A stretch of 64,000 nt of DNA, taken from Rebecca billardiae RCC1528 (lineage: Eukaryota > Protista > Haptophyta). How positions within the stretch are numbered: the stretch's first letter is position 1; each line of letters opens with the position of its first letter. A program made the position numbers and the translations under genes. Under the pieces are notes generated by a model. That model worked only from the letters and a program-made list of their open reading frames with translations. It was not told the DNA's origin and ran no database searches. This document shows positions 4,493-53,387 of the stretch, one piece after another. The stretch spans positions 248,001-312,000 of the forward strand of contig OZ251246.1 in the NCBI GenBank assembly GCA_965240325.2, read 5' to 3'.

Positions 4493-5427
4493 GGGAGGTG
4501 TCACCAAACCGAGCTCAGAATGAGGAGTGTACCGAGCTAAGCGGATGTACCATGGTACACTTTGGTACATAATTGGTACACTATTGGTACACTATTGGTA
4601 CATGTAAAGATGTACCAAGTGTACCAATAGTGTACCAATTATGTACCAAAGTGTACCAACGCATCCTGACAATGTACCAAATGCCATTGGGTGTACCATG
4701 GTACATTTTGGTACATCCACATAGCACATGTTGGTACATTACCTGATGTACCAACTCCTCCCAAATGTACCAACTCGTCCGAAGAATGTACCAATGTGTC
4801 CCAACGATGTACCAAATGTACCATACCATGTGTACCAACCGTCCCCCAATGTACCATCAATGTACCAACTTTTCATGAATGTACCAATAGTGTACCATCG
4901 TCGGCGATTCAGAGCAGTGGTACACTTTCCTGGGTGTACCTGGTACACCCAGAATCCCACCAAGTTGGTACATTCCGCTGAAATTATTTGGTACACTTGG
5001 TACATTTTCAGGACGAGTTGGTACATTTTTTGGTACACCCTGGGACAAGTTGGTACACTTTGGGGAGCAGTTGGTACATTCAGGGAGGAGTTGGTACACT
5101 TGGTACACTTTTGTGTGCAAACTGGTACATGGTTGGTACACGTTGGTACACTCATGAAATGTACCAAAGTGTACCATTTATGTACCAAAGTGTACATGGT
5201 ACACCCAACGACATTTGGTACATTGTCAGGATGCGTTGGTACACTTTGGTCACACCATTGGTACACTATTGGTACACTATTGGTACACTATTGGTACACT
5301 TGGTACATCTTTACATGTACCAATAGTGTACCAATAGTGATGTACCAATTATGTACCAAAGTGTACCATGGTACATCCGCTTAGCTCGGTACACTCCGGT
5401 TCTGAGCTCGGTTTGGTCGATCTACCC
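4493..5427. mobile_element. Non-autonomous foldback/MULE-like element built from GGTAC/GTACC repeats
   Basis: GGG...CCC termini; long imperfect TIRs (accaaaccgagctcagaa..ggagtgtaccgagctaagcggatgtaccatggtacactttggtacataattggtaca); flanking 10-bp direct repeat GTATGGATAC at 4483-4492 and 5428-5437. Confidence 0.8.
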
Positions 5428-6853
5428 GTATGGATACTACCCATATACTAAGCAAGTAGTTATTGGGGAACCAGCATGCAGCCTGCGCGTTGGCCAGCTA
5501 GGGACAACCACGGTTCCGGTTCTTTTCAAATATCGCTTTTAAAAAAATAATAAATGGTGTTCCACCCCTTGTAGCTATAACAGTTCTCTGCACAGTGGAA
5601 TTTACCCACCACAGGTGCATGGTTTCTGCACCCTGGCTGCTCCCTCGTGTTTGTCCAGCTGGCGCAACGCTCCGACAGTGTATCGGGTGGAATTCCCATT
5701 TTCTGGCGCACTTCCGCACTGGGGAGGCGGAAAAGCGGCATTTAATACGCGAATAAGGAATAAAATAATAATGGGAATAAAGCGCACGCAGTGCGAAGAA
5801 AGTTTTTCGCGGGTTACATTGTAGTATCAGCGTAGTTACTATGCGAAGCACCATCTGCTGCGAGGCGGCCTGCTTGCGCACGCGGCGTCCCGAGCACCCT
5901 CGGGGCTCAGCTGCGGCTTGGCCTGCGCACGCTCAGCAAGCTCGCGTGCGGCCTGCACCTTGCCCGCCGCCTTGACTCTCGAGCAAGAGGATCGACGTAA
6001 GTAAGAGTGAGCGTGTGCCGCCGAGCTGCTGTCCGGCAGCCACCCGCGACTGCAGCCGCTGGCCGCGGTGCCTGGCCTCGGCGCGGCCCCACAGGCTCAG
6101 CGCTGGGAGCTCATCCTCCTCCTGCGCTCCTCCTCCAGGCGTTTGAGCCGCCGCCGCCTTGGCCGCCTCGTCCTCGTCGATCAGCTGAACGGCGGGAGTG
6201 ATGTCTCTGCTCAGCTGAGTGTGACGTGACAAGCGAGGCGACGAGCGACAGCAGCCCGATGACCAAGCCGACGAGCTCATCGTACGAGCCGTCACGCGTG
6301 CGCTCGTGCCGTGTCTGAGCTGGCTCGCGCTCGTACGCCGACCAGGCTTTGCTCGGACTGAACGCGTGTGCTCAGGCGTCCTTGCGTGTGCGCTTGGACG
6401 GCCGCGGGCCGTCATCTGGTCCGACCGCGCGCAGCTCGATCTCGGAAGCGTTGAGCTGCTCCGCGGTTGACTCACCCTCTACCTCAGGTTCGACCACGGC
6501 AGCAGGCCCCGCAGCAGCCGCCAGGTAGCATCGGCAGGAGCCCCTGCGCCACCCGACGCCGTCCGCACATCGGCCAGCTTGCCGCACACGCGCTGGACCA
6601 CGGCCTCGCCGCGCTTGACGCGGATGTGGTGCCAGGTCGTCGTGCCAATCGTTTGGCTATCGACAACGGGCACGGGCACCTCGATCACGACAACGCCTGT
6701 CGCGTAGGCTGTGTAGCGATGTCCGTCCACGACTCCGTCGTGGGTGGACGGCGCACGCCATCGCGGCCGTGGGCGCAAGTGTCTCGTGAATTGTTTTTTT
6801 ATTCACTAATTCGCCCAGCCGCTACATCGAACTCGACAACGGTTGCTTTTATA

Positions 6854-7643
6854 GTCCCTCACAAGTTTAAGCCTCCCGACATTGTTCGCCATATCAGCGC
6901 AGCAAAGCAGCGGCGCGCCACCATACCAGGGGCGTACTTGGCCCACTCCACTGCCGTGCACATGAGGTGCGCCCGGACCCGATTGCTCGAGTCCTCGCAA
7001 ATAGGCGTGGCTGTGCATCCTGGGTTGACGTTTGGTACCCGGCGGCCGGCGAGCTCGACTGGCGGCGAGCAGACCTGCCTGCGTGCCGCCGGCTGTCGGC
7101 AGCCTCCGTGCGCTGAGCCGCGCGCCGCGCGGTGCGTGTGCGACGTAGCTCCGCCCACGCCACGCATGCACCCTCGCGCCGCGCCGCCAGCTTGGCGCTG
7201 CCGTCAGCCAGAGCCGATCGAGTGCATGCCCGAGCCTGCTCCGAGAGCATCAATATGGGCTGCGTGTGGCTGCGCGTGCACTTTCGTCGCCTAATTTTGC
7301 CAGCGTCGAGTTGGCGCGTGGCACGCCCACCGTAGCAGCACGACTCCCGAATGCACAAAAGCCGGGGGTCAGCTGAATTAATGCAGCTCACACGACCGCG
7401 CTCCACGCCGAAAACCAGCCCGTAGCTGCCCGCCGGCTGGCTCGTGCATGCGCACCGACTGCCGGGCGCATCGACACCGTGGCGCACAGAGCGCGGGTGC
7501 CGCGGCCGGGTGGGTATGTACTGACGCGGCTGGGCCTGGTGCATGCGCGGGCGGATGGGCTCTGCCCGGGTCGGCGCGTAGCGGGCGTGCGGGCTGAGAC
7601 AAAGTCGTGCCTGCTGCAGCCGGCAACTAAATTTGTGGGTCCC
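6854..7643. mobile_element. 790-bp element 'B', left copy (direct terminal repeat of the composite)
   Basis: Apparently identical to 22142-22931; imperfect TIRs (ta)gtccctcacaagttta / taaatttgtgggtccc(ta); no convincing protein. Confidence 0.85.
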
Positions 7644-8120
7644 TAAGTGAGCAGGTAGTAGAAAAGTCGGAACGAGGGCGAGGGCGACGGCGAGCGAGGC
7701 CGGCGTCGGTCCACATGGGTCGGGGATATTCCCGCCGTGCAGCGATCCCAGCGCGTCGTCCGCCTCCGGCGAGTTGGTGGGGCACAGGAGCCCACATCTT
7801 GCGCAGAGCAGCTGAGGTTAATCGGACGCTCCCGCGCGGCGGCGGGGCCGGCAGTTGGGGCCTCCACTGGGTTGGACTTGCGCCACGCCGCTTGTCATAG
7901 CTCGACGAGCTCAACCCGTGGCGCCGAGCTCGTGCCCAGCGCACATCCGCGAGGGCGTGCGGCCCCAGCGCACGCGGCGGCTGCGTCGCTGGGGCGCTCG
8001 CCATGGACGGAACGAGTTCGAATAGAGGCCACACCGCTTCGTCAGCTGTAAGATCAACTTTGGGCGGCTCGGGACGTAACGTGCAGTCATCTTTGGTGGC
8101 CAAGCAGCCGGCGGCGGCTG

Positions 8121-9422
8121 ATGGGCCGCGCGCCGACCGCGCCCAAAGATCGGCGCGGGCGCAAAGGCGCCCACCGCGTCGGCTACGCTCCGAACAGGCG
8201 GGTATCGCGGGAGTGTATTGCTCTGGATTACAACCCGAAGGCCCTGGGCCCTGAGGAGAGGTTTCACCATGCGATCGGCGCGTGCGTGCTGTGCCTCAAT
8301 GAAGGCTCTCCGTTGGCCTCAGCTTTCCAGAGGGCGGCGCGGTCGGCCGAGGTCACCGAGAAGACGATGAAGAAGTGGTTCATGGACTGGCACACGGAGG
8401 GCTGGCACATTGATGCTGACGGGAAGCCGAAGCGCGGTCCACGCCCACGCCTCAGTGCCGAGGCGCAGGCGGCGCTTACGTCCGAGCTCAGCGCCGGGCC
8501 GGCTGGTCAGAGTGTGCGGAAGGCTGCGTGCCGCGCCGTCGGTGCTGGATCGCTCGATGCGTCCGCGCTCGACGTCTCCGACGAGACGCTACGCCGCGCG
8601 GCGCGGAAGAAGATGGATTGGGAGCCGCTCAAGGTGAGGAAGCAGATCACGGCTCAGCAGGCGAAGAAGCGGGTGGCGTTCGCACGGTGGCTGCAGAGAG
8701 TCAAGGCGATGGTTGACAGGCTGTTCTTCACCGACTCGAAGTACTTCAAGTTCGACGTCACGAACCGGAGCACGGTGATGTCGTGGACGCTGCGTGACGA
8801 GCCCAAGCGCAAGCTGAACCAGGTCCAGGCAGGTGACTGCGTGATCCATGGCTACGCCGGCGCCTGCTCTCGCGGCATCACGCCGCTCTATTTTGCCACG
8901 GGCACTCACGGCCGCACGCATGAGAATGGTCGCGGCAAGCAGTGCCGTGGCGTGTGCTGGAAGGAGTACCTGAACGACGTGCTGCCTTTCCTGGACAAGG
9001 AGGCCCAGGCGCTCTTCGGCGACTTCATCAGACAGATGATCTTCCAGCAGGACAGTGCCTCACCCCACACGGCGCTGGCTGTGCGCCAATGGCTCGACGA
9101 GCGGTTTGGCCCCGAGGGACACCTTGGCCCCAAGTCCACCGAGGGTCAGCCGGGCCGTAGCTGGCCGCCGAACAGCGCCGACTTGTCGCTCATTGAGCAT
9201 GTCTGGGCGCGCGTGGAGCAGCTTCTCAACGCATGGAAGCACAAGTGGTGCACCGACAACCCGAGCAAGCAGCGGCCAACCTTCAAGGAGTTCGAGGAGG
9301 TGGTGAAGGCTAAGTTCGAGGAGGTACGGAACGACAAGAAGTTCATCCAGGCGCTGTTCAAATCCTATCGGCGTCGGCTGCAGGACTGCGTCGAGACCAA
9401 GGGTGAGCAGCGCGTGCGCTGA
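8121..9422 (+). CDS. Tc1-like DDE transposase, copy 1 (DD47E)
   Basis: N-terminal HTH-like region with RGPRPRLS linker; catalytic FFTDSK, FQQDSASPH, WPPNSADLSLIEHVW; C-terminal SYRRRLQDCVETKG. Confidence 0.93.
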   Translation: MGRAPTAPKDRRGRKGAHRVGYAPNRRVSRECIALDYNPKALGPEERFHHAIGACVLCLNEGSPLASAFQRAARSAEVTEKTMKKWFMDWHTEGWHIDADGKPKRGPRPRLSAEAQAALTSELSAGPAGQSVRKAACRAVGAGSLDASALDVSDETLRRAARKKMDWEPLKVRKQITAQQAKKRVAFARWLQRVKAMVDRLFFTDSKYFKFDVTNRSTVMSWTLRDEPKRKLNQVQAGDCVIHGYAGACSRGITPLYFATGTHGRTHENGRGKQCRGVCWKEYLNDVLPFLDKEAQALFGDFIRQMIFQQDSASPHTALAVRQWLDERFGPEGHLGPKSTEGQPGRSWPPNSADLSLIEHVWARVEQLLNAWKHKWCTDNPSKQRPTFKEFEEVVKAKFEEVRNDKKFIQALFKSYRRRLQDCVETKGEQRVR

Positions 9423-9540
9423 AGAGCAGTGTCGGACAATGATGGTATATAGTTTATTAGCTGCTCAGTATAGTAGATCTCGAGTCATATCATATCAGCC
9501 TATAGGCTATAGCTTACTCTACGTCTAACGTCACGTCTCA

Positions 9541-12465
9541 CGACGGCTGCGACGAGCGGCGGCTAGCTCAGCAGAGCGGCGCGACTGAGCGATGATGTGC
9601 GCGCCGGGCGGGCACGCCGACGCGTGAGCAGTGCGCCCCGGGGCCGCTCGACGCGCGCGCGCGCGCCCGGCCGCACGGCGCCTCCTCCACGCGGCCCCAT
9701 GTCCCGGCTCAGAGCGAGCAGCTGACAGCAACTGGTCTTCACGATCTGCGGCGGCGGCGAGCAGCTACGACTGCTACGGGGGCCTCAGAGCGCGGCGAGG
9801 ACGCGCGGGCTGGGCGCGATCGGGGTGCGGGACGCTCGGCGCGGCCCAGGCGCACCGAGCCCACGTGCCAGCGAGGTGGCGCGGCGCGCCGCGCGCGCGC
9901 GCTCGCGCGCCGACTTTTGTCGGGTCAGATCAGCTCTTACGGCAGCTCACGGCCTCAGCCGACGGCTGCGACCAGCGGCGGCTAGCTCAGCAGAGCGGCG
10001 CGACTGAGCGATGATGCGCGCGCCGGGCGGGCGCGCCGACACGTGAGCAGTGCGCCCAGGGGCCGCTCGACGCGCACGCGCGCGCCCGGCCGCACGGCGT
10101 CTCCTCCACGCGGCCCCATGTCCCGGCTCAGAGCGAGCAGCTGACAGCAGCTGGTCTTCACGATCTGCGGCGGCGGCGAGCAGCTACGACTGCTACGGGG
10201 GCCTCAGAGCGCGGCGAGGACGAGCTAGCTGGGCGAGATCCGGGTGCGGGGTGCTCTGCGCGGCCCAGGCGCACCGAGCCCACGTGCCAGCGAGGTGGCG
10301 CGGCGCGCCGCGCGCGCGCGCTCGCGCGCCGACTTTTGTCGGGTCAGATCAGCTGACGGCAGCTCACGGCCTCAGCCGACGGCTGCGACCAGCGGCGGCT
10401 AGCTCAGCAGAGCGGCGCGACTGAGCGATGATGCGCGCGCCGGGCGGGCGCGCCGACGCGTGAGCAGTGCGCCCAGGGGCCGCTCGACGCGCACGCGCGC
10501 GCCCGGCCGCACGGCGCCTCCTCCACGCGGCCCCATGTCCCGGCTCAGAGCGAGCAGCTGACAGCAGCTGGTCTTCACGATCTGCGGCGGCGGCGAGCAG
10601 CTACGACTGCTACGGGGGCCTCAGAGCGCGGCGAGGACGAGCTAGCTGGGCGAGATCCGGGTGCGGGGTGCTCTGCGTGGCCCAGGCGCACCGAGCCCAC
10701 GTGCCAGCGAGGTGGCGCGGCGCGCCGCGCGCGCGCGCTCGCGCGCCGACTTTTGTCGGGTCAGATCAGCTGACGGCAGCTCACGGCCTCAGCCGACGGC
10801 TGCGACCAGCGGCGGCTAGCTCAGCAGAGCGGCGCGACTGAGCGATGATGCGCGCGCCGGGCGGGCGCGCCGACGCGTGAGCAGTGCGCCCAGGGGCCGC
10901 TCGACGCGCACGCGCGCGCCCGGCCGCACGGCGTCTCCTCCACGCGGCCCCATGTCCCGGCTCAGAGCGAGCAGCTGACAGCAGCTGGTCTTCACGATCT
11001 GCGGCGGCGGCGAGCAGCTACGACTGCTACGGGGGCCTCAGAGCGCGGCGAGGACGAGCTAGCTGGGCGAGATCCGGGTGCGGGGCACTCGGCGCGGCCC
11101 GGGCACACCGAGCCCACGTGCCAGCGGGGCGGCGCGGCGCCGCGCGCGCGCGCGCGCTCGCGCCGACTTTTGTCGGGTCAGATCAGCTGACGGCAGCTCA
11201 CGGCCTCAGCCGACGGCTGCGACCAGCGGCGGCTAGCTCAGCAGAGCGGCGCGACTGAGCGATGATGCGCGCGCCGGGCGGGCGCGCCGACGCGTGAGCA
11301 GTGCGCCCAGGGGCCGCTCGACGCGCACGCGCGCGCCCGGCCGCACGGCGCCTCCTCCACGCGGCCCCATGTCCCGGCTCAGAGCGAGCAGCTGACAGCA
11401 GCTGGTCTTCACGATCTGCGGCGGCGGCGAGCAGCTACGACTGCTACGGGGACCTCAGAGCGCGGCGAGGACGAGCTAGCTGGGCGAGATCCGGGTGCGG
11501 GGTGCTCTGCGTGGCCCGGGCACACCGAGCCCACGTGCCAGCGGGGCGGCGCGGCGCCGCGCGCGCGCGCGCGCTCGCGCCGACTTTTGTCGGGTCAGAT
11601 CAGCTGACGGCAGCTCACGGCCTCAGCCGACGGCTGCGACCAGCGGCGGCTAGCTCAGCAGAGCGGCGCGACTGAGCGATGATGCGCGCGCCGGGCGGGC
11701 GCGCCGACGCGTGAGCAGTGCGCCCAGGGGCCGCTCGACGCGCACGCGCGCGCCCGGCCGCACGGCGCCTCCTCCACGCGGCCCCATGTCCCGGCTCAGA
11801 GCGAGCAGCTGACAGCAGCTGGTCTTCACGATCTGCGGCGGCGGCGAGCAGCTACGACTGCTACGGGGGCCTCAGAGCGCGGCGAGGACGAGCTAGCTGG
11901 GCGAGATCCGGGTGCGGGGTGCTCTGCGTGGCCCGGGCACACCGAGCCCACGTGCCAGCGGGGCGGCGCGGCGCCGCGCGCGCGCGCGCGCTCGCGCCGA
12001 CTTTTGTCGGGTCAGATCAGCCTACGGCAGCTCACGGCCTCAGCCGACGGCTGCGACCAGCGGCGGCTAGCTCAGCAGAGCGGCGCGACTGAGCGATGAT
12101 GCGCGCGCCGGGCGGGCGCGCCGACACGTGAGCAGTGCGCCCGGATGCCGCTCGACGCGCACGCGCGCGCCCGGCCGCACGGCGTCTCCTCCACGCGGCC
12201 CCATGTCCCGGCTCAGAGCGAGCAGCTGACAGCAGCTGGTCTTCACGATCTGCGGCGGCGGCGAGCAGCTACGACTGCTACGGGGGCCTCAGAGCGCGGC
12301 GAGGACGAGCTAGCTGGGCGAGATCGGGGTGCGGGGCACTCGGCGCGGCCCAGGCACACCGAGCCCACGTGCCAGCGGGGCGGCGCCGCGCCGCGCGCGC
12401 GCGCGCTCGCGCGCCGACTTTTGTCGGGTCAGATCAGCCTACGGCAGCTCACGGCCTCAGCCGAG
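9541..12465. repeat. Tandem array of 7 x ~417-bp GC-rich units in the 3' part of A1
   Basis: Period 417 (first interval 419): equivalent positions at 9631, 10050, 10467, 10884, 11301, 11718, 12135. Confidence 0.95.
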
Positions 12466-12952
12466 GCTGCTCACTTAAGTGAGCAGGTAGTAGAAAAGTC
12501 GGAACGAGGGCGAGGGCGACGGCGAGCGAGGCCGGCGTCGGTCCACATGGGTCGGGGATATTCCCGCCGTGCAGCGATCCCAGCGCGTCGTCCGCCTCCG
12601 GCGAGTTGGTGGGGCACAGGAGCCCACATCTTGCGCAGAGCAGCTGAGGTTAATCGGACGCTCCCGCGCGGCGGCGGGGCCGGCAGTTGGGGCCTCCACT
12701 GGGTTGGACTTGCGCCACGCCGCTTGTCATAGCTCGACGAGCTCAACCCGTGGCGCCGAGCTCGTGCCCAGCGCACATCCGCGAGGGCGTGCGGCCCCAG
12801 CGCACGCGGCGGCTGCGTCGCTGGGGCGCTCGCCATGGACGGAACGAGTTCGAATAGAGGCCACACCGCTTCGTCAGCTGTAAGATCAACTTTGGGCGGC
12901 TCGGGACGTAACGTGCAGTCATCTTTGGTGGCCAAGCAGCCGGCGGCGGCTG

Positions 12953-14254
12953 ATGGGCCGCGCGCCGACCGCGCCCAAAGATCGGCGCGGGCGCAAAGGC
13001 GCCCACCGCGTCGGCTACGCTCCGAACAGGCGGGTATCGCGGGAGTGTATTGCTCTGGATTACAACCCGAAGGCCCTGGGCCCTGAGGAGAGGTTTCACC
13101 ATGCGATCGGCGCGTGCGTGCTGTGCCTCAATGAAGGCTCTCCGTTGGCCTCAGCTTTCCAGAGGGCGGCGCGGTCGGCCGAGGTCACCGAGAAGACGAT
13201 GAAGAAGTGGTTCATGGACTGGCACACGGAGGGCTGGCACATTGATGCTGACGGGAAGCCGAAGCGCGGTCCACGCCCACGCCTCAGTGCCGAGGCGCAG
13301 GCGGCGCTTACGTCCGAGCTCAGCGCCGGGCCGGCTGGTCAGAGTGTGCGGAAGGCTGCGTGCCGCGCCGTCGGTGCTGGATCGCTCGATGCGTCCGCGC
13401 TCGACGTCTCCGACGAGACGCTACGCCGCGCGGCGCGGAAGAAGATGGATTGGGAGCCGCTCAAGGTGAGGAAGCAGATCACGGCTCAGCAGGCGAAGAA
13501 GCGGGTGGCGTTCGCACGGTGGCTGCAGAGAGTCAAGGCGATGGTTGACAGGCTGTTCTTCACCGACTCGAAGTACTTCAAGTTCGACGTCACGAACCGG
13601 AGCACGGTGATGTCGTGGACGCTGCGTGACGAGCCCAAGCGCAAGCTGAACCAGGTCCAGGCAGGTGACTGCGTGATCCATGGCTACGCCGGCGCCTGCT
13701 CTCGCGGCATCACGCCGCTCTATTTTGCCACGGGCACTCACGGCCGCACGCATGAGAATGGTCGCGGCAAGCAGTGCCGTGGCGTGTGCTGGAAGGAGTA
13801 CCTGAACGACGTGCTGCCTTTCCTGGACAAGGAGGCCCAGGCGCTCTTCGGCGACTTCATCAGACAGATGATCTTCCAGCAGGACAGTGCCTCACCCCAC
13901 ACGGCGCTGGCTGTGCGCCAATGGCTCGACGAGCGGTTTGGCCCCGAGGGACACCTTGGCCCCAAGTCCACCGAGGGTCAGCCGGGCCGTAGCTGGCCGC
14001 CGAACAGCGCCGACTTGTCGCTCATTGAGCATGTCTGGGCGCGCGTGGAGCAGCTTCTCAACGCATGGAAGCACAAGTGGTGCACCGACAACCCGAGCAA
14101 GCAGCGGCCACCCTTCAAGGAGTTCGAGGAGGTGGTGAAGGCTAAGTTCGAGGAGGTACGGAACGACAAGAAGTTCATCCAGGCGCTGTTCAAATCCTAT
14201 CGGCGTCGGCTGCAGGACTGCGTCGAGACCAAGGGTGAGCAGCGCGTGCGCTGA
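12953..14254 (+). CDS. Tc1-like DDE transposase, copy 2
   Basis: Protein identical to copy 1 except QRPTF->QRPPF. Confidence 0.93.
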   Translation: MGRAPTAPKDRRGRKGAHRVGYAPNRRVSRECIALDYNPKALGPEERFHHAIGACVLCLNEGSPLASAFQRAARSAEVTEKTMKKWFMDWHTEGWHIDADGKPKRGPRPRLSAEAQAALTSELSAGPAGQSVRKAACRAVGAGSLDASALDVSDETLRRAARKKMDWEPLKVRKQITAQQAKKRVAFARWLQRVKAMVDRLFFTDSKYFKFDVTNRSTVMSWTLRDEPKRKLNQVQAGDCVIHGYAGACSRGITPLYFATGTHGRTHENGRGKQCRGVCWKEYLNDVLPFLDKEAQALFGDFIRQMIFQQDSASPHTALAVRQWLDERFGPEGHLGPKSTEGQPGRSWPPNSADLSLIEHVWARVEQLLNAWKHKWCTDNPSKQRPPFKEFEEVVKAKFEEVRNDKKFIQALFKSYRRRLQDCVETKGEQRVR

Positions 14255-14372
14255 AGAGCAGTGTCGGACAATGATGGTATATAGTTTATTAGCTGCTCAG
14301 TATAGTAGATCTCGAGTCATATCATATCAGCCTATAGGCTATAGCTTACTCTACGTCTAACGTCACGTCTCA

Positions 14373-17297
14373 CGACGGCTGCGACGAGCGGCGGCTAGCT
14401 CAGCAGAGCGGCGCGACTGAGCGATGATGTGCGCGCCGGGCGGGCACGCCGACGCGTGAGCAGTGCGCCCCGGGGCCGCTCGACGCGCGCGCGCGCGCCC
14501 GGCCGCACGGCGCCTCCTCCACGCGGCCCCATGTCCCGGCTCAGAGCGAGCAGCTGACAGCAACTGGTCTTCACGATCTGCGGCGGCGGCGAGCAGCTAC
14601 GACTGCTACGGGGGCCTCAGAGCGCGGCGAGGACGCGCGGGCTGGGCGCGATCGGGGTGCGGGACGCTCGGCGCGGCCCAGGCGCACCGAGCCCACGTGC
14701 CAGCGAGGTGGCGCGGCGCGCCGCGCGCGCGCGCTCGCGCGCCGACTTTTGTCGGGTCAGATCAGCTCTTACGGCAGCTCACGGCCTCAGCCGACGGCTG
14801 CGACCAGCGGCGGCTAGCTCAGCAGAGCGGCGCGACTGAGCGATGATGCGCGCGCCGGGCGGGCGCGCCGACACGTGAGCAGTGCGCCCAGGGGCCGCTC
14901 GACGCGCACGCGCGCGCCCGGCCGCACGGCGTCTCCTCCACGCGGCCCCATGTCCCGGCTCAGAGCGAGCAGCTGACAGCAGCTGGTCTTCACGATCTGC
15001 GGCGGCGGCGAGCAGCTACGACTGCTACGGGGGCCTCAGAGCGCGGCGAGGACGAGCTAGCTGGGCGAGATCCGGGTGCGGGGTGCTCTGCGCGGCCCAG
15101 GCGCACCGAGCCCACGTGCCAGCGAGGTGGCGCGGCGCGCCGCGCGCGCGCGCTCGCGCGCCGACTTTTGTCGGGTCAGATCAGCTGACGGCAGCTCACG
15201 GCCTCAGCCGACGGCTGCGACCAGCGGCGGCTAGCTCAGCAGAGCGGCGCGACTGAGCGATGATGCGCGCGCCGGGCGGGCGCGCCGACGCGTGAGCAGT
15301 GCGCCCAGGGGCCGCTCGACGCGCACGCGCGCGCCCGGCCGCACGGCGCCTCCTCCACGCGGCCCCATGTCCCGGCTCAGAGCGAGCAGCTGACAGCAGC
15401 TGGTCTTCACGATCTGCGGCGGCGGCGAGCAGCTACGACTGCTACGGGGGCCTCAGAGCGCGGCGAGGACGAGCTAGCTGGGCGAGATCCGGGTGCGGGG
15501 TGCTCTGCGTGGCCCAGGCGCACCGAGCCCACGTGCCAGCGAGGTGGCGCGGCGCGCCGCGCGCGCGCGCTCGCGCGCCGACTTTTGTCGGGTCAGATCA
15601 GCTGACGGCAGCTCACGGCCTCAGCCGACGGCTGCGACCAGCGGCGGCTAGCTCAGCAGAGCGGCGCGACTGAGCGATGATGCGCGCGCCGGGCGGGCGC
15701 GCCGACGCGTGAGCAGTGCGCCCAGGGGCCGCTCGACGCGCACGCGCGCGCCCGGCCGCACGGCGTCTCCTCCACGCGGCCCCATGTCCCGGCTCAGAGC
15801 GAGCAGCTGACAGCAGCTGGTCTTCACGATCTGCGGCGGCGGCGAGCAGCTACGACTGCTACGGGGGCCTCAGAGCGCGGCGAGGACGAGCTAGCTGGGC
15901 GAGATCCGGGTGCGGGGCACTCGGCGCGGCCCGGGCACACCGAGCCCACGTGCCAGCGGGGCGGCGCGGCGCCGCGCGCGCGCGCGCGCTCGCGCCGACT
16001 TTTGTCGGGTCAGATCAGCTGACGGCAGCTCACGGCCTCAGCCGACGGCTGCGACCAGCGGCGGCTAGCTCAGCAGAGCGGCGCGACTGAGCGATGATGC
16101 GCGCGCCGGGCGGGCGCGCCGACGCGTGAGCAGTGCGCCCAGGGGCCGCTCGACGCGCACGCGCGCGCCCGGCCGCACGGCGCCTCCTCCACGCGGCCCC
16201 ATGTCCCGGCTCAGAGCGAGCAGCTGACAGCAGCTGGTCTTCACGATCTGCGGCGGCGGCGAGCAGCTACGACTGCTACGGGGACCTCAGAGCGCGGCGA
16301 GGACGAGCTAGCTGGGCGAGATCCGGGTGCGGGGTGCTCTGCGTGGCCCGGGCACACCGAGCCCACGTGCCAGCGGGGCGGCGCGGCGCCGCGCGCGCGC
16401 GCGCGCTCGCGCCGACTTTTGTCGGGTCAGATCAGCTGACGGCAGCTCACGGCCTCAGCCGACGGCTGCGACCAGCGGCGGCTAGCTCAGCAGAGCGGCG
16501 CGACTGAGCGATGATGCGCGCGCCGGGCGGGCGCGCCGACGCGTGAGCAGTGCGCCCAGGGGCCGCTCGACGCGCACGCGCGCGCCCGGCCGCACGGCGC
16601 CTCCTCCACGCGGCCCCATGTCCCGGCTCAGAGCGAGCAGCTGACAGCAGCTGGTCTTCACGATCTGCGGCGGCGGCGAGCAGCTACGACTGCTACGGGG
16701 GCCTCAGAGCGCGGCGAGGACGAGCTAGCTGGGCGAGATCCGGGTGCGGGGTGCTCTGCGTGGCCCGGGCACACCGAGCCCACGTGCCAGCGGGGCGGCG
16801 CGGCGCCGCGCGCGCGCGCGCGCTCGCGCCGACTTTTGTCGGGTCAGATCAGCCTACGGCAGCTCACGGCCTCAGCCGACGGCTGCGACCAGCGGCGGCT
16901 AGCTCAGCAGAGCGGCGCGACTGAGCGATGATGCGCGCGCCGGGCGGGCGCGCCGACACGTGAGCAGTGCGCCCGGATGCCGCTCGACGCGCACGCGCGC
17001 GCCCGGCCGCACGGCGTCTCCTCCACGCGGCCCCATGTCCCGGCTCAGAGCGAGCAGCTGACAGCAGCTGGTCTTCACGATCTGCGGCGGCGGCGAGCAG
17101 CTACGACTGCTACGGGGGCCTCAGAGCGCGGCGAGGACGAGCTAGCTGGGCGAGATCGGGGTGCGGGGCACTCGGCGCGGCCCAGGCACACCGAGCCCAC
17201 GTGCCAGCGGGGCGGCGCCGCGCCGCGCGCGCGCGCGCTCGCGCGCCGACTTTTGTCGGGTCAGATCAGCCTACGGCAGCTCACGGCCTCAGCCGAG
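14373..17297. repeat. 7 x ~417-bp array in A2
   Basis: Same units as in A1, shifted by 4832. Confidence 0.95.
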
Positions 17298-17784
17298 GCT
17301 GCTCACTTAAGTGAGCAGGTAGTAGAAAAGTCGGAACGAGGGCGAGGGCGACGGCGAGCGAGGCCGGCGTCGGTCCACATGGGTCGGGGATATTCCCGCC
17401 GTGCAGCGATCCCAGCGCGTCGTCCGCCTCCGGCGAGTTGGTGGGGCACAGGAGCCCACATCTTGCGCAGAGCAGCTGAGGTTAATCGGACGCTCCCGCG
17501 CGGCGGCGGGGCCGGCAGTTGGGGCCTCCACTGGGTTGGACTTGCGCCACGCCGCTTGTCATAGCTCGACGAGCTCAACCCGTGGCGCCGAGCTCGTGCC
17601 CAGCGCACATCCGCGAGGGCGTGCGGCCCCAGCGCACGCGGCGGCTGCGTCGCTGGGGCGCTCGCCATGGACGGAACGAGTTCGAATAGAGGCCACACCG
17701 CTTCGTCAGCTGTAAGATCAACTTTGGGCGGCTCGGGACGTAACGTGCAGTCATCTTTGGTGGCCAAGCAGCCGGCGGCGGCTG

Positions 17785-19086
17785 ATGGGCCGCGCGCCGA
17801 CCGCGCCCAAAGATCGGCGCGGGCGCAAAGGCGCCCACCGCGTCGGCTACGCTCCGAACAGGCGGGTATCGCGGGAGTGTATTGCTCTGGATTACAACCC
17901 GAAGGCCCTGGGCCCTGAGGAGAGGTTTCACCATGCGATCGGCGCGTGCGTGCTGTGCCTCAATGAAGGCTCTCCGTTGGCCTCAGCTTTCCAGAGGGCG
18001 GCGCGGTCGGCCGAGGTCACCGAGAAGACGATGAAGAAGTGGTTCATGGACTGGCACACGGAGGGCTGGCACATTGATGCTGACGGGAAGCCGAAGCGCG
18101 GTCCACGCCCACGCCTCAGTGCCGAGGCGCAGGCGGCGCTTACGTCCGAGCTCAGCGCCGGGCCGGCTGGTCAGAGTGTGCGGAAGGCTGCGTGCCGCGC
18201 CGTCGGTGCTGGATCGCTCGATGCGTCCGCGCTCGACGTCTCCGACGAGACGCTACGCCGCGCGGCGCGGAAGAAGATGGATTGGGAGCCGCTCAAGGTG
18301 AGGAAGCAGATCACGGCTCAGCAGGCGAAGAAGCGGGTGGCGTTCGCACGGTGGCTGCAGAGAGTCAAGGCGATGGTTGACAGGCTGTTCTTCACCGACT
18401 CGAAGTACTTCAAGTTCGACGTCACGAACCGGAGCACGGTGATGTCGTGGACGCTGCGTGACGAGCCCAAGCGCAAGCTGAACCAGGTCCAGGCAGGTGA
18501 CTGCGTGATCCATGGCTACGCCGGCGCCTGCTCTCGCGGCATCACGCCGCTCTATTTTGCCACGGGCACTCACGGCCGCACGCATGAGAATGGTCGCGGC
18601 AAGCAGTGCCGTGGCGTGTGCTGGAAGGAGTACCTGAACGACGTGCTGCCTTTCCTGGACAAGGAGGCCCAGGCGCTCTTCGGCGACTTCATCAGACAGA
18701 TGATCTTCCAGCAGGACAGTGCCTCACCCCACACGGCGCTGGCTGTGCGCCAATGGCTCGACGAGCGGTTTGGCCCCGAGGGACACCTTGGCCCCAAGTC
18801 CACCGAGGGTCAGCCGGGCCGTAGCTGGCCGCCGAACAGCGCCGACTTGTCGCTCATTGAGCATGTCTGGGCGCGCGTGGAGCAGCTTCTCAACGCATGG
18901 AAGCACAAGTGGTGCACCGACAACCCGAGCAAGCAGCGGCCAACCTTCAAGGAGTTCGAGGAGGTGGTGAAGGCTAAGTTCGAGGAGGTACGGAACGACA
19001 AGAAGTTCATCCAGGCGCTGTTCAAATCCTATCGGCGTCGGCTGCAGGACTGCGTCGAGACCAAGGGTGAGCAGCGCGTGCGCTGA
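17785..19086 (+). CDS. Tc1-like DDE transposase, copy 3
   Basis: Protein identical to copy 1. Confidence 0.93.
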   Translation: MGRAPTAPKDRRGRKGAHRVGYAPNRRVSRECIALDYNPKALGPEERFHHAIGACVLCLNEGSPLASAFQRAARSAEVTEKTMKKWFMDWHTEGWHIDADGKPKRGPRPRLSAEAQAALTSELSAGPAGQSVRKAACRAVGAGSLDASALDVSDETLRRAARKKMDWEPLKVRKQITAQQAKKRVAFARWLQRVKAMVDRLFFTDSKYFKFDVTNRSTVMSWTLRDEPKRKLNQVQAGDCVIHGYAGACSRGITPLYFATGTHGRTHENGRGKQCRGVCWKEYLNDVLPFLDKEAQALFGDFIRQMIFQQDSASPHTALAVRQWLDERFGPEGHLGPKSTEGQPGRSWPPNSADLSLIEHVWARVEQLLNAWKHKWCTDNPSKQRPTFKEFEEVVKAKFEEVRNDKKFIQALFKSYRRRLQDCVETKGEQRVR

Positions 19087-19204
19087 AGAGCAGTGTCGGA
19101 CAATGATGGTATATAGTTTATTAGCTGCTCAGTATAGTAGATCTCGAGTCATATCATATCAGCCTATAGGCTATAGCTTACTCTACGTCTAACGTCACGT
19201 CTCA

Positions 19205-22129
19205 CGACGGCTGCGACGAGCGGCGGCTAGCTCAGCAGAGCGGCGCGACTGAGCGATGATGTGCGCGCCGGGCGGGCACGCCGACGCGTGAGCAGTGCGC
19301 CCCGGGGCCGCTCGACGCGCGCGCGCGCGCCCGGCCGCACGGCGCCTCCTCCACGCGGCCCCATGTCCCGGCTCAGAGCGAGCAGCTGACAGCAACTGGT
19401 CTTCACGATCTGCGGCGGCGGCGAGCAGCTACGACTGCTACGGGGGCCTCAGAGCGCGGCGAGGACGCGCGGGCTGGGCGCGATCGGGGTGCGGGACGCT
19501 CGGCGCGGCCCAGGCGCACCGAGCCCACGTGCCAGCGAGGTGGCGCGGCGCGCCGCGCGCGCGCGCTCGCGCGCCGACTTTTGTCGGGTCAGATCAGCTC
19601 TTACGGCAGCTCACGGCCTCAGCCGACGGCTGCGACCAGCGGCGGCTAGCTCAGCAGAGCGGCGCGACTGAGCGATGATGCGCGCGCCGGGCGGGCGCGC
19701 CGACACGTGAGCAGTGCGCCCAGGGGCCGCTCGACGCGCACGCGCGCGCCCGGCCGCACGGCGTCTCCTCCACGCGGCCCCATGTCCCGGCTCAGAGCGA
19801 GCAGCTGACAGCAGCTGGTCTTCACGATCTGCGGCGGCGGCGAGCAGCTACGACTGCTACGGGGGCCTCAGAGCGCGGCGAGGACGAGCTAGCTGGGCGA
19901 GATCCGGGTGCGGGGTGCTCTGCGCGGCCCAGGCGCACCGAGCCCACGTGCCAGCGAGGTGGCGCGGCGCGCCGCGCGCGCGCGCTCGCGCGCCGACTTT
20001 TGTCGGGTCAGATCAGCTGACGGCAGCTCACGGCCTCAGCCGACGGCTGCGACCAGCGGCGGCTAGCTCAGCAGAGCGGCGCGACTGAGCGATGATGCGC
20101 GCGCCGGGCGGGCGCGCCGACGCGTGAGCAGTGCGCCCAGGGGCCGCTCGACGCGCACGCGCGCGCCCGGCCGCACGGCGCCTCCTCCACGCGGCCCCAT
20201 GTCCCGGCTCAGAGCGAGCAGCTGACAGCAGCTGGTCTTCACGATCTGCGGCGGCGGCGAGCAGCTACGACTGCTACGGGGGCCTCAGAGCGCGGCGAGG
20301 ACGAGCTAGCTGGGCGAGATCCGGGTGCGGGGTGCTCTGCGTGGCCCAGGCGCACCGAGCCCACGTGCCAGCGAGGTGGCGCGGCGCGCCGCGCGCGCGC
20401 GCTCGCGCGCCGACTTTTGTCGGGTCAGATCAGCTGACGGCAGCTCACGGCCTCAGCCGACGGCTGCGACCAGCGGCGGCTAGCTCAGCAGAGCGGCGCG
20501 ACTGAGCGATGATGCGCGCGCCGGGCGGGCGCGCCGACGCGTGAGCAGTGCGCCCAGGGGCCGCTCGACGCGCACGCGCGCGCCCGGCCGCACGGCGTCT
20601 CCTCCACGCGGCCCCATGTCCCGGCTCAGAGCGAGCAGCTGACAGCAGCTGGTCTTCACGATCTGCGGCGGCGGCGAGCAGCTACGACTGCTACGGGGGC
20701 CTCAGAGCGCGGCGAGGACGAGCTAGCTGGGCGAGATCCGGGTGCGGGGCACTCGGCGCGGCCCGGGCACACCGAGCCCACGTGCCAGCGGGGCGGCGCG
20801 GCGCCGCGCGCGCGCGCGCGCTCGCGCCGACTTTTGTCGGGTCAGATCAGCTGACGGCAGCTCACGGCCTCAGCCGACGGCTGCGACCAGCGGCGGCTAG
20901 CTCAGCAGAGCGGCGCGACTGAGCGATGATGCGCGCGCCGGGCGGGCGCGCCGACGCGTGAGCAGTGCGCCCAGGGGCCGCTCGACGCGCACGCGCGCGC
21001 CCGGCCGCACGGCGCCTCCTCCACGCGGCCCCATGTCCCGGCTCAGAGCGAGCAGCTGACAGCAGCTGGTCTTCACGATCTGCGGCGGCGGCGAGCAGCT
21101 ACGACTGCTACGGGGACCTCAGAGCGCGGCGAGGACGAGCTAGCTGGGCGAGATCCGGGTGCGGGGTGCTCTGCGTGGCCCGGGCACACCGAGCCCACGT
21201 GCCAGCGGGGCGGCGCGGCGCCGCGCGCGCGCGCGCGCTCGCGCCGACTTTTGTCGGGTCAGATCAGCCTACGGCAGCTCACGGCCTCAGCCGACGGCTG
21301 CGACCAGCGGCGGCTAGCTCAGCAGAGCGGCGCGACTGAGCGATGATGCGCGCGCCGGGCGGGCGCGCCGACGCGTGAGCAGTGCGCCCAGGGGCCGCTC
21401 GACGCGCACGCGCGCGCCCGGCCGCACGGCGCCTCCTCCACGCGGCCCCATGTCCCGGCTCAGAGCGAGCAGCTGACAGCAGCTGGTCTTCACGATCTGC
21501 GGCGGCGGCGAGCAGCTACGACTGCTACGGGGGCCTCAGAGCGCGGCGAGGACGAGCTAGCTGGGCGAGATCCGGGTGCGGGGTGCTCTGCGTGGCCCGG
21601 GCACACCGAGCCCACGTGCCAGCGGGGCGGCGCGGCGCCGCGCGCGCGCGCGCGCTCGCGCCGACTTTTGTCGGGTCAGATCAGCCTACGGCAGCTCACG
21701 GCCTCAGCCGACGGCTGCGACCAGCGGCGGCTAGCTCAGCAGAGCGGCGCGACTGAGCGATGATGCGCGCGCCGGGCGGGCGCGCCGACACGTGAGCAGT
21801 GCGCCCGGATGCCGCTCGACGCGCACGCGCGCGCCCGGCCGCACGGCGTCTCCTCCACGCGGCCCCATGTCCCGGCTCAGAGCGAGCAGCTGACAGCAGC
21901 TGGTCTTCACGATCTGCGGCGGCGGCGAGCAGCTACGACTGCTACGGGGGCCTCAGAGCGCGGCGAGGACGAGCTAGCTGGGCGAGATCGGGGTGCGGGG
22001 CACTCGGCGCGGCCCAGGCACACCGAGCCCACGTGCCAGCGGGGCGGCGCCGCGCCGCGCGCGCGCGCGCTCGCGCGCCGACTTTTGTCGGGTCAGATCA
22101 GCCTACGGCAGCTCACGGCCTCAGCCGAG
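19205..22129. repeat. 7 x ~417-bp array in A3
   Basis: Same units; unit 5 carries the cagcctacgg variant that is restricted to units 6-7 in A1 and A2. Confidence 0.95.
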
Positions 22130-22141
22130 GCTGCTCACTTA

Positions 22142-22931
22142 GTCCCTCACAAGTTTAAGCCTCCCGACATTGTTCGCCATATCAGCGCAGCAAAGCAGCG
22201 GCGCGCCACCATACCAGGGGCGTACTTGGCCCACTCCACTGCCGTGCACATGAGGTGCGCCCGGACCCGATTGCTCGAGTCCTCGCAAATAGGCGTGGCT
22301 GTGCATCCTGGGTTGACGTTTGGTACCCGGCGGCCGGCGAGCTCGACTGGCGGCGAGCAGACCTGCCTGCGTGCCGCCGGCTGTCGGCAGCCTCCGTGCG
22401 CTGAGCCGCGCGCCGCGCGGTGCGTGTGCGACGTAGCTCCGCCCACGCCACGCATGCACCCTCGCGCCGCGCCGCCAGCTTGGCGCTGCCGTCAGCCAGA
22501 GCCGATCGAGTGCATGCCCGAGCCTGCTCCGAGAGCATCAATATGGGCTGCGTGTGGCTGCGCGTGCACTTTCGTCGCCTAATTTTGCCAGCGTCGAGTT
22601 GGCGCGTGGCACGCCCACCGTAGCAGCACGACTCCCGAATGCACAAAAGCCGGGGGTCAGCTGAATTAATGCAGCTCACACGACCGCGCTCCACGCCGAA
22701 AACCAGCCCGTAGCTGCCCGCCGGCTGGCTCGTGCATGCGCACCGACTGCCGGGCGCATCGACACCGTGGCGCACAGAGCGCGGGTGCCGCGGCCGGGTG
22801 GGTATGTACTGACGCGGCTGGGCCTGGTGCATGCGCGGGCGGATGGGCTCTGCCCGGGTCGGCGCGTAGCGGGCGTGCGGGCTGAGACAAAGTCGTGCCT
22901 GCTGCAGCCGGCAACTAAATTTGTGGGTCCC
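22142..22931. mobile_element. 790-bp element 'B', right copy
   Basis: Direct repeat of 6854-7643, followed by TATA and the remainder of element C. Confidence 0.85.
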
Positions 22932-24426
22932 TATACACCCGCGGTCTTTTGACTGTGCAAATGGGGCGCCGCCCCATGCTCAAATCCGAAGAGAACGAAG
23001 ATGTAAAAGTGTCTGGTCCCTAGATACTGTGCTGTCCGGGTCCCGGTCCGGTCAGATCTGAGCAGCCGGGTTTTCCGCCCGGATAGGCCAGAAAATGGGA
23101 TTTTCACCCTATCATAGTATAATGGCCCGCGGTGCAGGGCGGAGCGCGCAGCGTGGAGCCCGCACCAGCGGGCCCGAACCACGTTTCAAAAAGATCTTTG
23201 ATCAAGAAAAAAGGGACGGGGGGCGGCGGAAAAAAAGGGACGGGGGGCGATTTTTAGGGCTGGCGGAGACCGAGTTTCGAGTTTTTGAGATCGCATTGAG
23301 AGGTCTATCAGGCCCAAAAAAACCGCGCCCAGCTGATTCCCTTAAGTAAAGTGCGATCTGGACGTCAGCTGGACGTGACATTAGTGTAACGGTTCGTTAC
23401 GAGCGAATCGTACTCGTCTTCCCGGATCGCGTGACGTCCGGACTGGGCCACATCCGGATCGTCGGAGGTGACGTGCCCCGGCACGATGGGCGATGGCGGA
23501 TATGCGGGACGGCGCCTGCACGTGCCTCCGGACCCGCCTCCCGCTTGCTGCTCACGCAGTCAGCTGCGACCGTGGCGCATGATCGCAGAAGCAGTGCCGG
23601 CAGTACGGCCTGCATCAGCTAGTGCCGCGCCGTCGTGGCGCGCGCGGTACGGTTGCGCGTTTGCAGCGCTCGCCGCCTCGGCGACGGCACGCGCGTGCGG
23701 CTCAGGTGTGTCAAATGCGGTCTCGTCGGCGCGCTTTCGCCTGCCACCTCGTGCACCCGTGCCGCCAGTTTCATCGTCTTCATGAGGACTGCTGCTGCTG
23801 TCGCCATCCGCTCTCCATCACCCCGAGTCGCCGGTCGCGCGGCGCGCGCGGTAGGCACTAGGCAGGGCGTACGGTCACTCACCCGTGCAACGGGTCAAGT
23901 GGCCAGAGTACGTCTGGTCGTTGGCTGGCACGGGCCGCAGCGCTAAAGCACCCTGCTGTCACACCCGACTCCTTCAGTACTCCGAGCTCCGCGGCACGAC
24001 TCACTCGGCACGATCGCGGACGGGTCGGATCCGAGCTGATCAGCCAGAGTTGGACACAGTTTGGCAGCTACTAGTAGTAATTCCGATGCCGATGGCACGA
24101 TCGCGGACGGGTCGGATCCGAGCTGATCAGCCAGTTGGACATTTGGCAGCTAGTTGTCAGACGGACGTCCGATTTGACGACCGGTGCCGGGTGCGGTCTC
24201 AGGTCCGCTGCTGTGATTGTGTGAAGTGTGAATGAGTCTCGCGGTCGCGCAGGCAGGGCGACGGTCGGACTAATATAGCTTCAGTCATCTCAGAACCGAC
24301 TTCAACTGGCGAACTGCCACTACGGCGGAGAGCCGCGATTGCACGGCCACCGCGGGCCCCCAACTGCGTTGATTCTATGCAGAAAAGGACCGCGGAACGC
24401 GGTCATATTATTGATATAATGATCGG

Positions 24427-27350: not shown

Positions 27351-27386
27351 CCCCCCCTCGACAGCCATAGCCGCGAGCTGCGCCGC

Positions 27387-33250: not shown

Positions 33251-33306
33251 CGGCGCGATCGATGAGAAAGCGCCGCGCGTACGATCCCTCCCGATCGCTG
33301 CATGCA

Positions 33307-52046: not shown

Positions 52047-53387
52047 GGGTGAAAATCCCATTTTCTGGCCTATCCGGGCGGAAAATCCGGCTGCTCAGAT
52101 CTGACCGGACCGGGACCCGGACAGCACAGTATCTAGGGACCAGACACTTTTACATCTTCGTTCTCTTCGGATTTGAGCATGGGGCGGCGCCCCATTTGCA
52201 CAGTCAAAAGACCGCGGGTGTAAAAGCAACCGTTGTCGAGTTCGATGTAGCGGCTGGGCGAATTAGTGAATAAAAAAACAATTCACGAGACACTTGCGCC
52301 CACGGCCGCGATGGCGTGCGCCGTCCACCCACGACGGAGTCGTGGACGGACATCGCTACACAGCCTACGCGACAGGCGTTGTCGTGATCGAGGTGCCCGT
52401 GCCCGTTGTCGATAGCCAAACGATTGGCACGACGACCTGGCACCACATCCGCGTCAAGCGCGGCGAGGCCGTGGTCCAGCGCGTGTGCGGCAAGCTGGCC
52501 GATGTGCGGACGGCGTCGGGTGGCGCAGGGGCTCCTGCCGATGCTACCTGGCGGCTGCTGCGGGGCCTGCTGCCGTGGTCGAACCTGAGGCAGAGGGTGA
52601 GTCAACCGCGGAGCAGCTCAACGCTTCCGAGATCGAGCTGCGCGCGGTCGGACCAGATGACGGCCCGCGGCCGTCCAAGCGCACACGCAAGGACGCCTGA
52701 GCACACGCGTTCAGTCCGAGCAAAGCCTGGTCGGCGTACGAGCGCGAGCCAGCTCAGACACGGCACGAGCGCACGCGTGACGGCTCGTACGATGAGCTCG
52801 TCGGCTTGGTCATCGGGCTGCTGTCGCTCGTCGCCTCGCTTGTCACGTCACACTCAGCTGAGCAGAGACATCACTCCCGCCGTTCAGCTGATCGACGAGG
52901 ACGAGGCGGCCAAGGCGGCGGCGGCTCAAACGCCTGGAGGAGGAGCGCAGGAGGAGGATGAGCTCCCAGCGCTGAGCCTGTGGGGCCGCGCCGAGGCCAG
53001 GCACCGCGGCCAGCGGCTGCAGTCGCGGGTGGCTGCCGGACAGCAGCTCGGCGGCACACGCTCACTCTTACTTACGTCGATCCTCTTGCTCGAGAGTCAA
53101 GGCGGCGGGCAAGGTGCAGGCCGCACGCGAGCTTGCTGAGCGTGCGCAGGCCAAGCCGCAGCTGAGCCCCGAGGGTGCTCGGGACGCCGCGTGCGCAAGC
53201 AGGCCGCCTCGCAGCAGATGGTGCTTCGCATAGTAACTACGCTGATACTACAATGTAACCCGCGAAAAAATTTCTTCGCACTGCGTGCGCTTTATTCCCA
53301 TTATTATTTTATTCCTTATTCGCGTATTAAATGCCGCTTTTCCGCCTCCCCAGTGCGGAAGTGCGCCAGAAAATGGGAATTCCACCC
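52047..53387. mobile_element. TIR element 'C' copy 2, intact, inverted relative to copy 1
   Basis: Same TIRs; TSD CTAT (52043-52046, 53388-53391); about 3 substitutions versus copy 1; contains the empty TA site (plus strand gggtg-TA-aaagcaacc, ~52221). Confidence 0.92.

Follow-up and report, generated by a model that had tools for sequence, protein, structure and literature searches.

What kind of mobile element carries three tandem copies of a transposase-bearing module between two identical direct repeats, and which part of it moves? This question is raised by a 64,000-nucleotide stretch of the genome of the haptophyte alga Rebecca billardiae RCC1528 (contig OZ251246.1 of assembly GCA_965240325.2; C30:248001-312000 in the contig numbering used here), hereafter termed the window. 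The assembly spans 72 Mb in 41 contigs with about 67% G+C, and its contigs are designated by the letter C and a number. In the window, a block of 16,082 bp (6852-22933) is inserted inside a different transposable element, termed element C. The block is composed of two modules, B and A, in the order TA, B, A, TA, A, TA, A, B, TA, with module coordinates obtained from self-BLAST and direct reading of the window (Table 1). The insert is probably one member of a young and likely active family of IS630/Tc1/mariner transposons, in which a pair of long terminal direct repeats (LTDRs, module B) encloses an inner module (INT, module A). In this LTDR-INT-LTDR build, the tripling of A would be secondary and local, and the transposase encoded by A would act on the ends of B.

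The insertion event can be read from an uninterrupted second copy of element C in the same window, which contains the empty site. Both halves of the interrupted copy align to the second copy with an overlap of exactly 2 bp, the dinucleotide TA. This overlap identifies TA as the target duplication and gives the inserted unit TAG at its start and CTA at its end. A 4-bp TATA duplication was also considered and is ruled out by the empty site. At the joints between B and A, the sole TA is the terminal TA of B, while one additional TA stands outside each B. The joint between two A copies is a perfect 20-bp palindrome. A first-pass annotation, made from the sequence alone, had described the B-[A-A-A]-B anatomy with single TAs at the inner joints and extra TAs outside, the palindrome, the empty site with one TA, and a unit with TAG...CTA termini and a TA duplication; all of these are borne out by self-BLAST, direct reading and the empty-site comparison, and its count of eight rather than six TAs is correct. 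Element C itself is a 1,341-bp element with terminal inverted repeats (TIRs), whose ends start with GGGTGGAATTCCC. Its two copies in the window are 99.8% alike, and their target duplications are 4 bp long, TATC in one copy and ATAG in the other.

Module B has a length of 794 bp and the termini TAG...CTA. The window contains two copies of it, in direct orientation and 100% identical. Its inverted ends are imperfect and form an 18-bp TIR with 13 of 18 matches (p ~3e-5). B gave no Pfam, atlas, Rfam or tRNA match, and its open reading frame (ORF) of 216 amino acids was not accepted as a gene (no family, atlas score 0.78). B appears to be non-coding. When the ends of A and B are compared in all orientations, they have only short motifs in common. 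Elsewhere in the genome, two B copies (C10:268669-271163 and C35:669270-671769) are each split by an insert of ~1.7 kb, at B positions ~651 and ~393 respectively, and the start of this insert has no match in the window. In addition, C11:1815387-1823455 contains four matches to the left end of B with three mismatches each, at a spacing of exactly 2,683 bp and with no ends like the right end of B; these matches may belong to a related element that is repeated in tandem.

The presence of identical direct repeats, together with solo repeats, tandem multimers and private single-nucleotide polymorphisms (SNPs) found in both repeats of an element (all described below), invites the reading of the block as a non-autonomous long terminal repeat (LTR) retrotransposon, with B as its LTR. 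This reading is refuted by the target-site duplication (TSD) at the empty site, which is 2 bp long and not 4-6 bp as in LTR retrotransposons, and it retains next to no probability. Moreover, the termini are TAG...CTA instead of TG...CA, no tRNA-complementary site follows B, and no purine tract precedes B2. The sole gene encodes a predicted DDD transposase, there is no reverse transcriptase, and B-TA-B also occurs without any internal region.

Module A is bounded by a perfect 9-bp TIR, AGTGAGCAG, and the subterminal word AAAAGTCGG is found at both of its ends, 17 and 54 nt in. For A, a TTAA duplication (piggyBac/Kolobok-like) and a TAA/TTA duplication (Harbinger-like) were considered and rejected: the sequences at the outer A joints are CTAA and TTAG, and the two 3-bp flanks are inverted relative to each other instead of being direct repeats. 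The right part of A is a satellite of 417-bp units. Every unit is a repeat of A's right subterminal region, and the final one stops 5 bp before the A terminus. The number of units is 5-17 in the A copies read in sequence, and up to ~22 in a cluster on C1 by length arithmetic. A contains one convincing gene, and the rest of the module is satellite. The remaining ORFs have no Pfam match, no Rfam family or tRNA was found in A, and a Pfam scan of its ORFs found no gene for a His-Me finger (homing-type) nuclease.

The product of the A gene had no Pfam match at the default threshold, and only Pfam with relaxed thresholds, NCBIfam, a full search with HMMER and a comparison of folds identified it. NCBIfam NF033545 (IS630-family transposase) matches with an E value of 2.9e-12, a hit that stays below the curated cut-off. 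The Pfam domains HTH_29 and HTH_32 match weakly (E 0.1-0.2) and are clear in relatives of the protein. HMMER, run over 1.84 billion representatives, returned ~400 distant Tc1/IS630-like proteins, and HTH_Tnp_Tc3_2, HTH_32 and DDE_3 domains are found on the matches; the only two below 1e-30 are the protein itself and a 37% relative. A PDB sequence search gave no match, and a word-based protein search returned only the protein itself. In an alignment of 24 sequences, D205, D311 and D354 are invariant, with 42 residues between the second and third D. The AlphaFold model (pLDDT 82) matches the catalytic domains of Mos1 (E 2.7e-11), Sleeping Beauty and SETMAR with template modelling (TM) scores of 0.76-0.83 on the target. 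Residues 30-162 of the model are helical, and full-length Mos1 aligned over ~400 columns with a TM score of only 0.4-0.5. By profile and predicted fold, the A protein is classed as an IS630/Tc1/mariner transposase, and it is an isolated branch of Tc1/mariner.

The features shared with Tc1, Sleeping Beauty and Mos1 are the DDD/E RNase H-like fold, the TA duplication, the short inverted ends and possibly an N-terminal helical DNA-binding part. However, canonical Tc1/mariner members have a TIR-gene-TIR organization without long direct repeats, whereas this element has LTDRs and the 42-residue spacer. The transposase frame is open in all 23 genomic A copies, and it is the only abundant intact transposase of the TA type in the genome. 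Other open IS630/Tc1-type frames are found at C11:82759-84006 (37% identical to the A protein), C31:420083-420901, C29:739000-740007 and C20:1683592-1684599, and the C31 frame scores above the NCBIfam cut-off. No B-like end was found near any of the other IS630-type genes of the genome.

A census of the assembly shows how A and B are arranged elsewhere. Every left end of the 23 intact A copies abuts B or another A, a context established by coordinates or sequence for 22 copies and by length arithmetic for one. There is no solo A among them, and none lies at another TA or beside an element other than B or A. The B-A-B arrangement is found at about 11 further loci. These include monomers on C39, C35, C10, C33 and C17 and two on C1, multimers of the B-A-B-A-B type on C3 (with a deletion) and in the C1 cluster, and B-A4-B on C7 (2670034-2687615), where the A-TA-A joint was read in sequence; at one C1 locus an A-TA-A joint follows from length arithmetic. 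B is also found without A, as one B-TA-B dimer (C1:2318313-2319898) and as three full solo copies (C8, C13 and C10). About 29 of the 34 genomic B left ends are in composites. The first-pass annotation had suggested, as one possibility, a composite transposon with direct terminal repeats of ~790 bp and had named solo Bs, B-B dimers and the neighbours of A as informative. The recurrence of B-A-B and the presence of the dimer and solo forms support this suggestion, and the placement of A is the opposite of insertion at random TAs.

The outer arrangement TA/TAG...CTA/TA is found at nine composite loci of which both ends were sequenced, in the B-B dimer, and in two of the three full solo Bs, the third having TG on its right, and the flanks differ between loci. 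Therefore, the B-ended block is the unit that moves, and it lands in TA and duplicates it. Every outer end reads TA/TA because the termini of B themselves include a TA. We infer that the A transposase acts on these ends, because the genome has no other intact TA-type transposase in abundance and none of the other elements with B-like ends codes for such an enzyme.

Table 1. Coordinates of the insertion, its modules and its host element in the window
Feature	Position	Strand	Remarks
Left TA target-site duplication	6850..6851	.	Single TA at the empty site in element C copy 2
B1, left long terminal direct repeat	6852..7645	+	100% identical to B2
A copy 1, inner module, 4,830 bp	7646..12475	+	
Predicted transposase gene, 433 aa, IS630/Tc1/mariner type	8121..9422	+	Copies 2 and 3 at 12953-14254 and 17785-19086
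Satellite, 7 x 417 bp, right 60% of A	9541..12470	+	TRF and unit-by-unit reading; also 14373-17302 and 19205-22134
TA between A1 and A2	12476..12477	.	Centre of the 20-bp palindrome
A copy 2, 4,830 bp	12478..17307	+	1 substitution relative to copy 1
TA between A2 and A3	17308..17309	.	
A copy 3, 4,830 bp	17310..22139	+	2 adjacent substitutions relative to copy 1
B2, right long terminal direct repeat	22140..22933	+	
Right TA target-site duplication	22934..22935	.	Empty-site comparison
Host element C, copy 1	5685..6851 (left part); 22934-23109 (right part)	+	Split by the insertion
Element C, copy 2, uninterrupted	52047..53387	-	Empty-site TA at 52221-52222

The closest described counterpart is KolobokP, a group of DNA transposons of molluscs and other animals in which an INT lies between two LTDRs that have TIRs of their own (Kojima & Bao 2022, Mobile DNA 13:24, PMC9587614). 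KolobokP occurs as solo LTDRs with TSDs, as (LTDR-INT)n-LTDR, and as LTDR-(INT)2-4-LTDR with one terminal motif at the joints between INTs; its authors explained these forms by unequal crossover, a possible circle of LTDR plus INT, and excision of the inner LTDR from multimers (PMC9587614). Both elements have the transposase in the INT, and the LTDRs of KolobokP are 450-660 bp long with short TIRs, compared to 794 bp for B. Moreover, every form of KolobokP (the monomer, the solo repeat, the two kinds of multimer, and inner joints with a single motif) is found here. However, the transposase in the present case is of the IS630/Tc1/mariner type and not of the Kolobok superfamily, the TSD is TA, no His-Me nuclease is present, the INT carries a 417-bp satellite as well as a 9-bp TIR of its own, and the element comes from an alga. 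The element is not a KolobokP, and is a second, independent case of LTDR architecture. In the literature searched, the term LTDR in its DNA-transposon sense was found only in PMC9587614 and one citing review, and the LTDR build was earlier described there only for KolobokP.

Distant relatives of the transposase were found on 80 metagenome contigs (21-34% identity), and an exact-match scan of metagenome contigs for the left end of A gave no matches. Six of the 80 overlap head to tail at their ends. In one of them (L066), the overlap is 714 bp long and 96% identical and spans the 3' part of the gene, and it therefore represents two tandem copies. A scan of the six for two modules gave a clear result only for L053 and a moderate one for L052, and the other four have no clear pattern. 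L053 (28% identity) has a period of 2,073 bp that splits at two TAs into modules of 1,318 bp, with an ORF of 379 amino acids and ends that match at 10 of 12 positions, and 751 bp, with ends that match at 21 of 21. Its two inverted repeats abut, and the contig has no flanks. L053 reads as the same two-module pattern as in B and A, but it could also be a tandem array of a 1,364-bp element, with the abutting repeats taken as one TIR of 31-33 bp. The closest metagenome relative (L051, 34% identity) contains a 200-bp direct repeat (2253-2832), 94.5% identical and with a spacing of 382 bp, downstream of its gene where the contig ends, and the repeat may be a satellite placed like the 417-bp one.

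It could be proposed that A is instead an independent Tc1-like transposon that prefers the TA at abutted ends, whether of a B-B dimer, a B circle or its own, and that it enters there by ordinary insertion with TA duplication. Tc1/mariner integration favours near-palindromic targets centred on TA. The abutted ends described above are near-palindromic in this way (20/20 for A-A, 13/18 per arm for B-B, 21/21 per arm for L053), an unoccupied B-TA-B dimer is available, and A has a perfect 9-bp TIR with TA on both sides. However, 0 of the 23 A copies are at another TA or beside anything but B or A. The satellite counts of tandem A copies always match those of their neighbours, although they vary between donor loci, and this speaks against an origin of the copies elsewhere. 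The haplotypes of A and the variants of B form a single nested lineage and not a set of independent captures. We therefore regard this explanation as rather unlikely. The first-pass annotation had held that the structure implies targeting of transposon ends by A or its integration as concatemers; in that form the claim is not supported, since there is no solo A to indicate that A moves by itself and the shared satellite counts point to local amplification. Targeting of transposon ends is not required to account for the layout.

It is distinctly unlikely that the layout is a matter of chance nesting, in which B would be an unrelated miniature inverted-repeat transposable element moved by another transposase, and A would have fallen once into a B-B dimer and hitch-hiked since, so that the layout has no function. 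The unlike termini of A and B are compatible with this, and the genes on C31, C29, C20 and C11 show that other IS630-type transposases exist in the genome. However, none of these genes is near a B-like end, the composite is the main form of B, and a similar two-module unit is found in L053, a relative with 28% identity.

The triple A might also be an artefact, with one A or another number between the two Bs and the repeat expanded by the assembler. The A copies are 99.96-100% identical, and each carries a 2.9-kb satellite, which makes the region hard to assemble. However, the three A copies of the window carry different substitutions, so that an assembler looping over one sequence would not have produced them as byte-identical repeats. 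The A-TA-A joint is also present on C7 and, by length arithmetic, at the C1 locus, the assembly of only 41 contigs implies long reads, and KolobokP has an LTDR-(INT)n-LTDR form as well. An assembly artefact is thus very improbable. The C1 cluster has a peculiarity of its own: its outer flanks (C1:2327503-2329002 and 2390506-2392005; L021 and L016) are inverted copies identical at 1497 of 1500 positions, and the coordinates place two A copies tail to tail within it. These inverted flanks could be either a real large palindrome or a misassembly.

The arrays of A grew locally and not by copies coming from other loci, because the satellite counts match within arrays and differ between loci. The three copies in the window have 7, 7 and 7 units and differ from one another by 1 and 2 substitutions, while the four copies on C7 have 5, 5, 5 and 5 units and are 100% identical. 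The SNPs of B are also informative. In the elements on C33 and C17, a private SNP is found in both Bs (positions 146 and 791, respectively), and in one C1 element a SNP is found in a single B only (position 648). The A haplotypes put C17 beside C3, whose Bs do not have the C17 change. Under plain cut-and-paste, a change would stay at the end where it arose. Unequal crossover between the Bs makes a hybrid middle B, and this pattern of SNPs is expected from monomers that were re-cut out of the resulting multimers.

These observations suggest the following scheme. Unequal crossover between Bs would produce (B-A)n-B multimers, such as those on C3 and C1. Loss of the inner B from B-A-B-A-B would then leave A-TA-A, and unequal exchange between A copies would raise their number to three or four. 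Both the unequal-crossover and the re-cutting steps have visible products in the genome. At the level of the ends, the chemistry of Tc1 and Tc3 makes cuts that are staggered by 2 nt. If the module ends are cut in this manner, with the cut in the 3' strand at the boundary and that in the 5' strand 2 nt within the module, then flanks and element ends would all carry 3'-TA overhangs that are mutually complementary. Removal of a TA-ended module would reseal to one TA, and so would the joining of two ends or the closing of a circle, while a true insertion would add a second TA. An ordinary site from which a B-ended unit is excised would be left as TATATA. A true insertion with B ends gives TA/TA and the inner joints have one TA, which means that the inner joints were not made by B insertion. 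The single-TA inner joints could have arisen either by insertion of A, which has no TA ends of its own, into a shared TA, or by joining or resealing.

The same overhangs would permit a second route, in which excised modules circularise, or are ligated end to end through their TA overhangs, or a circle of B plus A is copied by a rolling-circle mode. The products would enter the genome either by transposase action on the outer B ends or by homologous recombination, with a B or A already resident there as partner. One TA at every inner joint, including that of B-TA-B, fits this route, as do the private SNPs shared by an element's two Bs and the overlaps, head to tail, in six of the 80 metagenome relatives, with the two copies of L066 96% alike. 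Circular units have also been discussed for KolobokP (PMC9587614). However, circle junctions are not observable in an assembly, and recombination with a resident B would leave a private SNP in one B only. Head-to-head joints, which palindromic TA ends would equally allow, are not seen, except for the one tail-to-tail A pair in the suspect C1 inverted duplication. This route is best considered unlikely.

Several points weigh against a B-ended element that is moved by the A transposase and in which A multiplied locally. The ends of A and B have no convincing similarity, so that the cutting of B ends by this enzyme is deduced from the genome content as given above, and a perfect 9-bp TIR flanked by TA would equally be expected if A were an independent Tc1-like element that sits within a B-B junction. 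The proposed 2-nt stagger, like the sticky TA ends, derives from what is known of the family. No excision footprint, circle or half-element was seen in the assembly, in which circle junctions would not be observable. The loss of two or three inner Bs while both outer Bs are kept takes several steps, and the A copy number is that of the assembly. Finally, L053 has no flanks and has the alternative reading given above. With these points taken into account, the LTDR-INT-LTDR transposon remains the probable explanation.

Other features of the window are separate from the insertion. A copia-type LTR retrotransposon lies on the minus strand at 26630-34027, with 721-bp LTRs (26630-27350 and 33307-34027) that are 100% identical and ORFs with RVT_2 and a zinc knuckle. 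An actin-domain gene is also present. A tandem repeat with a 25-bp unit (a 103-bp period also scored), 24 copies and ~90% matches is found at 36456-37071. Upstream of element C lies a pair of direct repeats of ~820 bp (1253-2067 and 3566-4387) that are 83% identical, and the 915 bp at 4503-5417 are 76% self-complementary and form a long imperfect palindrome.

In the Tc1 family, precise head-to-tail arrays have been described for Bari1 of Drosophila melanogaster, in which each copy is short of exactly its first two nucleotides, a loss attributed to aberrant transposase activity (PMC8834629). Here one TA, also 2 nt, is lost per joint, and Bari1 is the nearest Tc1/mariner precedent for precise head-to-tail joints. 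However, Bari1 arrays are single-module, comprise ~80 copies, are heterochromatic and are not mobile as a block, whereas the present arrays lie within a mobile LTDR unit. In bacteria, Tn9-like composite transposons contain direct insertion sequence (IS) repeats that mobilise what lies between them. Such composite transposons were discussed alongside KolobokP (PMC9587614), and they resemble the present element in having two small TIR-bounded elements in direct orientation around a centre. The roles are reversed, however: in bacterial composites the transposase gene lies in the flanking IS, around a central cargo, whereas here the flanks appear to be non-coding and the centre encodes the transposase.

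A broader proposal, which we hold only tentatively and consider doubtful, is that a whole Tc1/mariner-like branch, including this family, its 37% paralog and distant relatives such as L053, is built of two TA-ended modules. In such a branch, modules could be removed without a scar, form circles and rejoin head to tail through the self-complementary TA overhangs of Tc1-type 2-nt staggered cuts, and the LTDRs would be an inherited and maintained design. If this is true, direct end-repeats would give a cut-and-paste element a second, recombination-based way to multiply, and the two-module, TA-ended design would explain the 2-nt loss in Bari1 arrays. The satellite is a further product of this family, born from the element's own end and varying from 5 to ~22 units between loci. 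Recurrence of the KolobokP set of forms in a superfamily and a kingdom unrelated to it would mean that the LTDR design arises repeatedly or is selected. With 23 of 23 genes open, repeats that are 100% identical, an empty site and clean TA bookkeeping, this young family is a good system for the study of composite movement, multimer formation and a possible involvement of sticky 2-nt ends.

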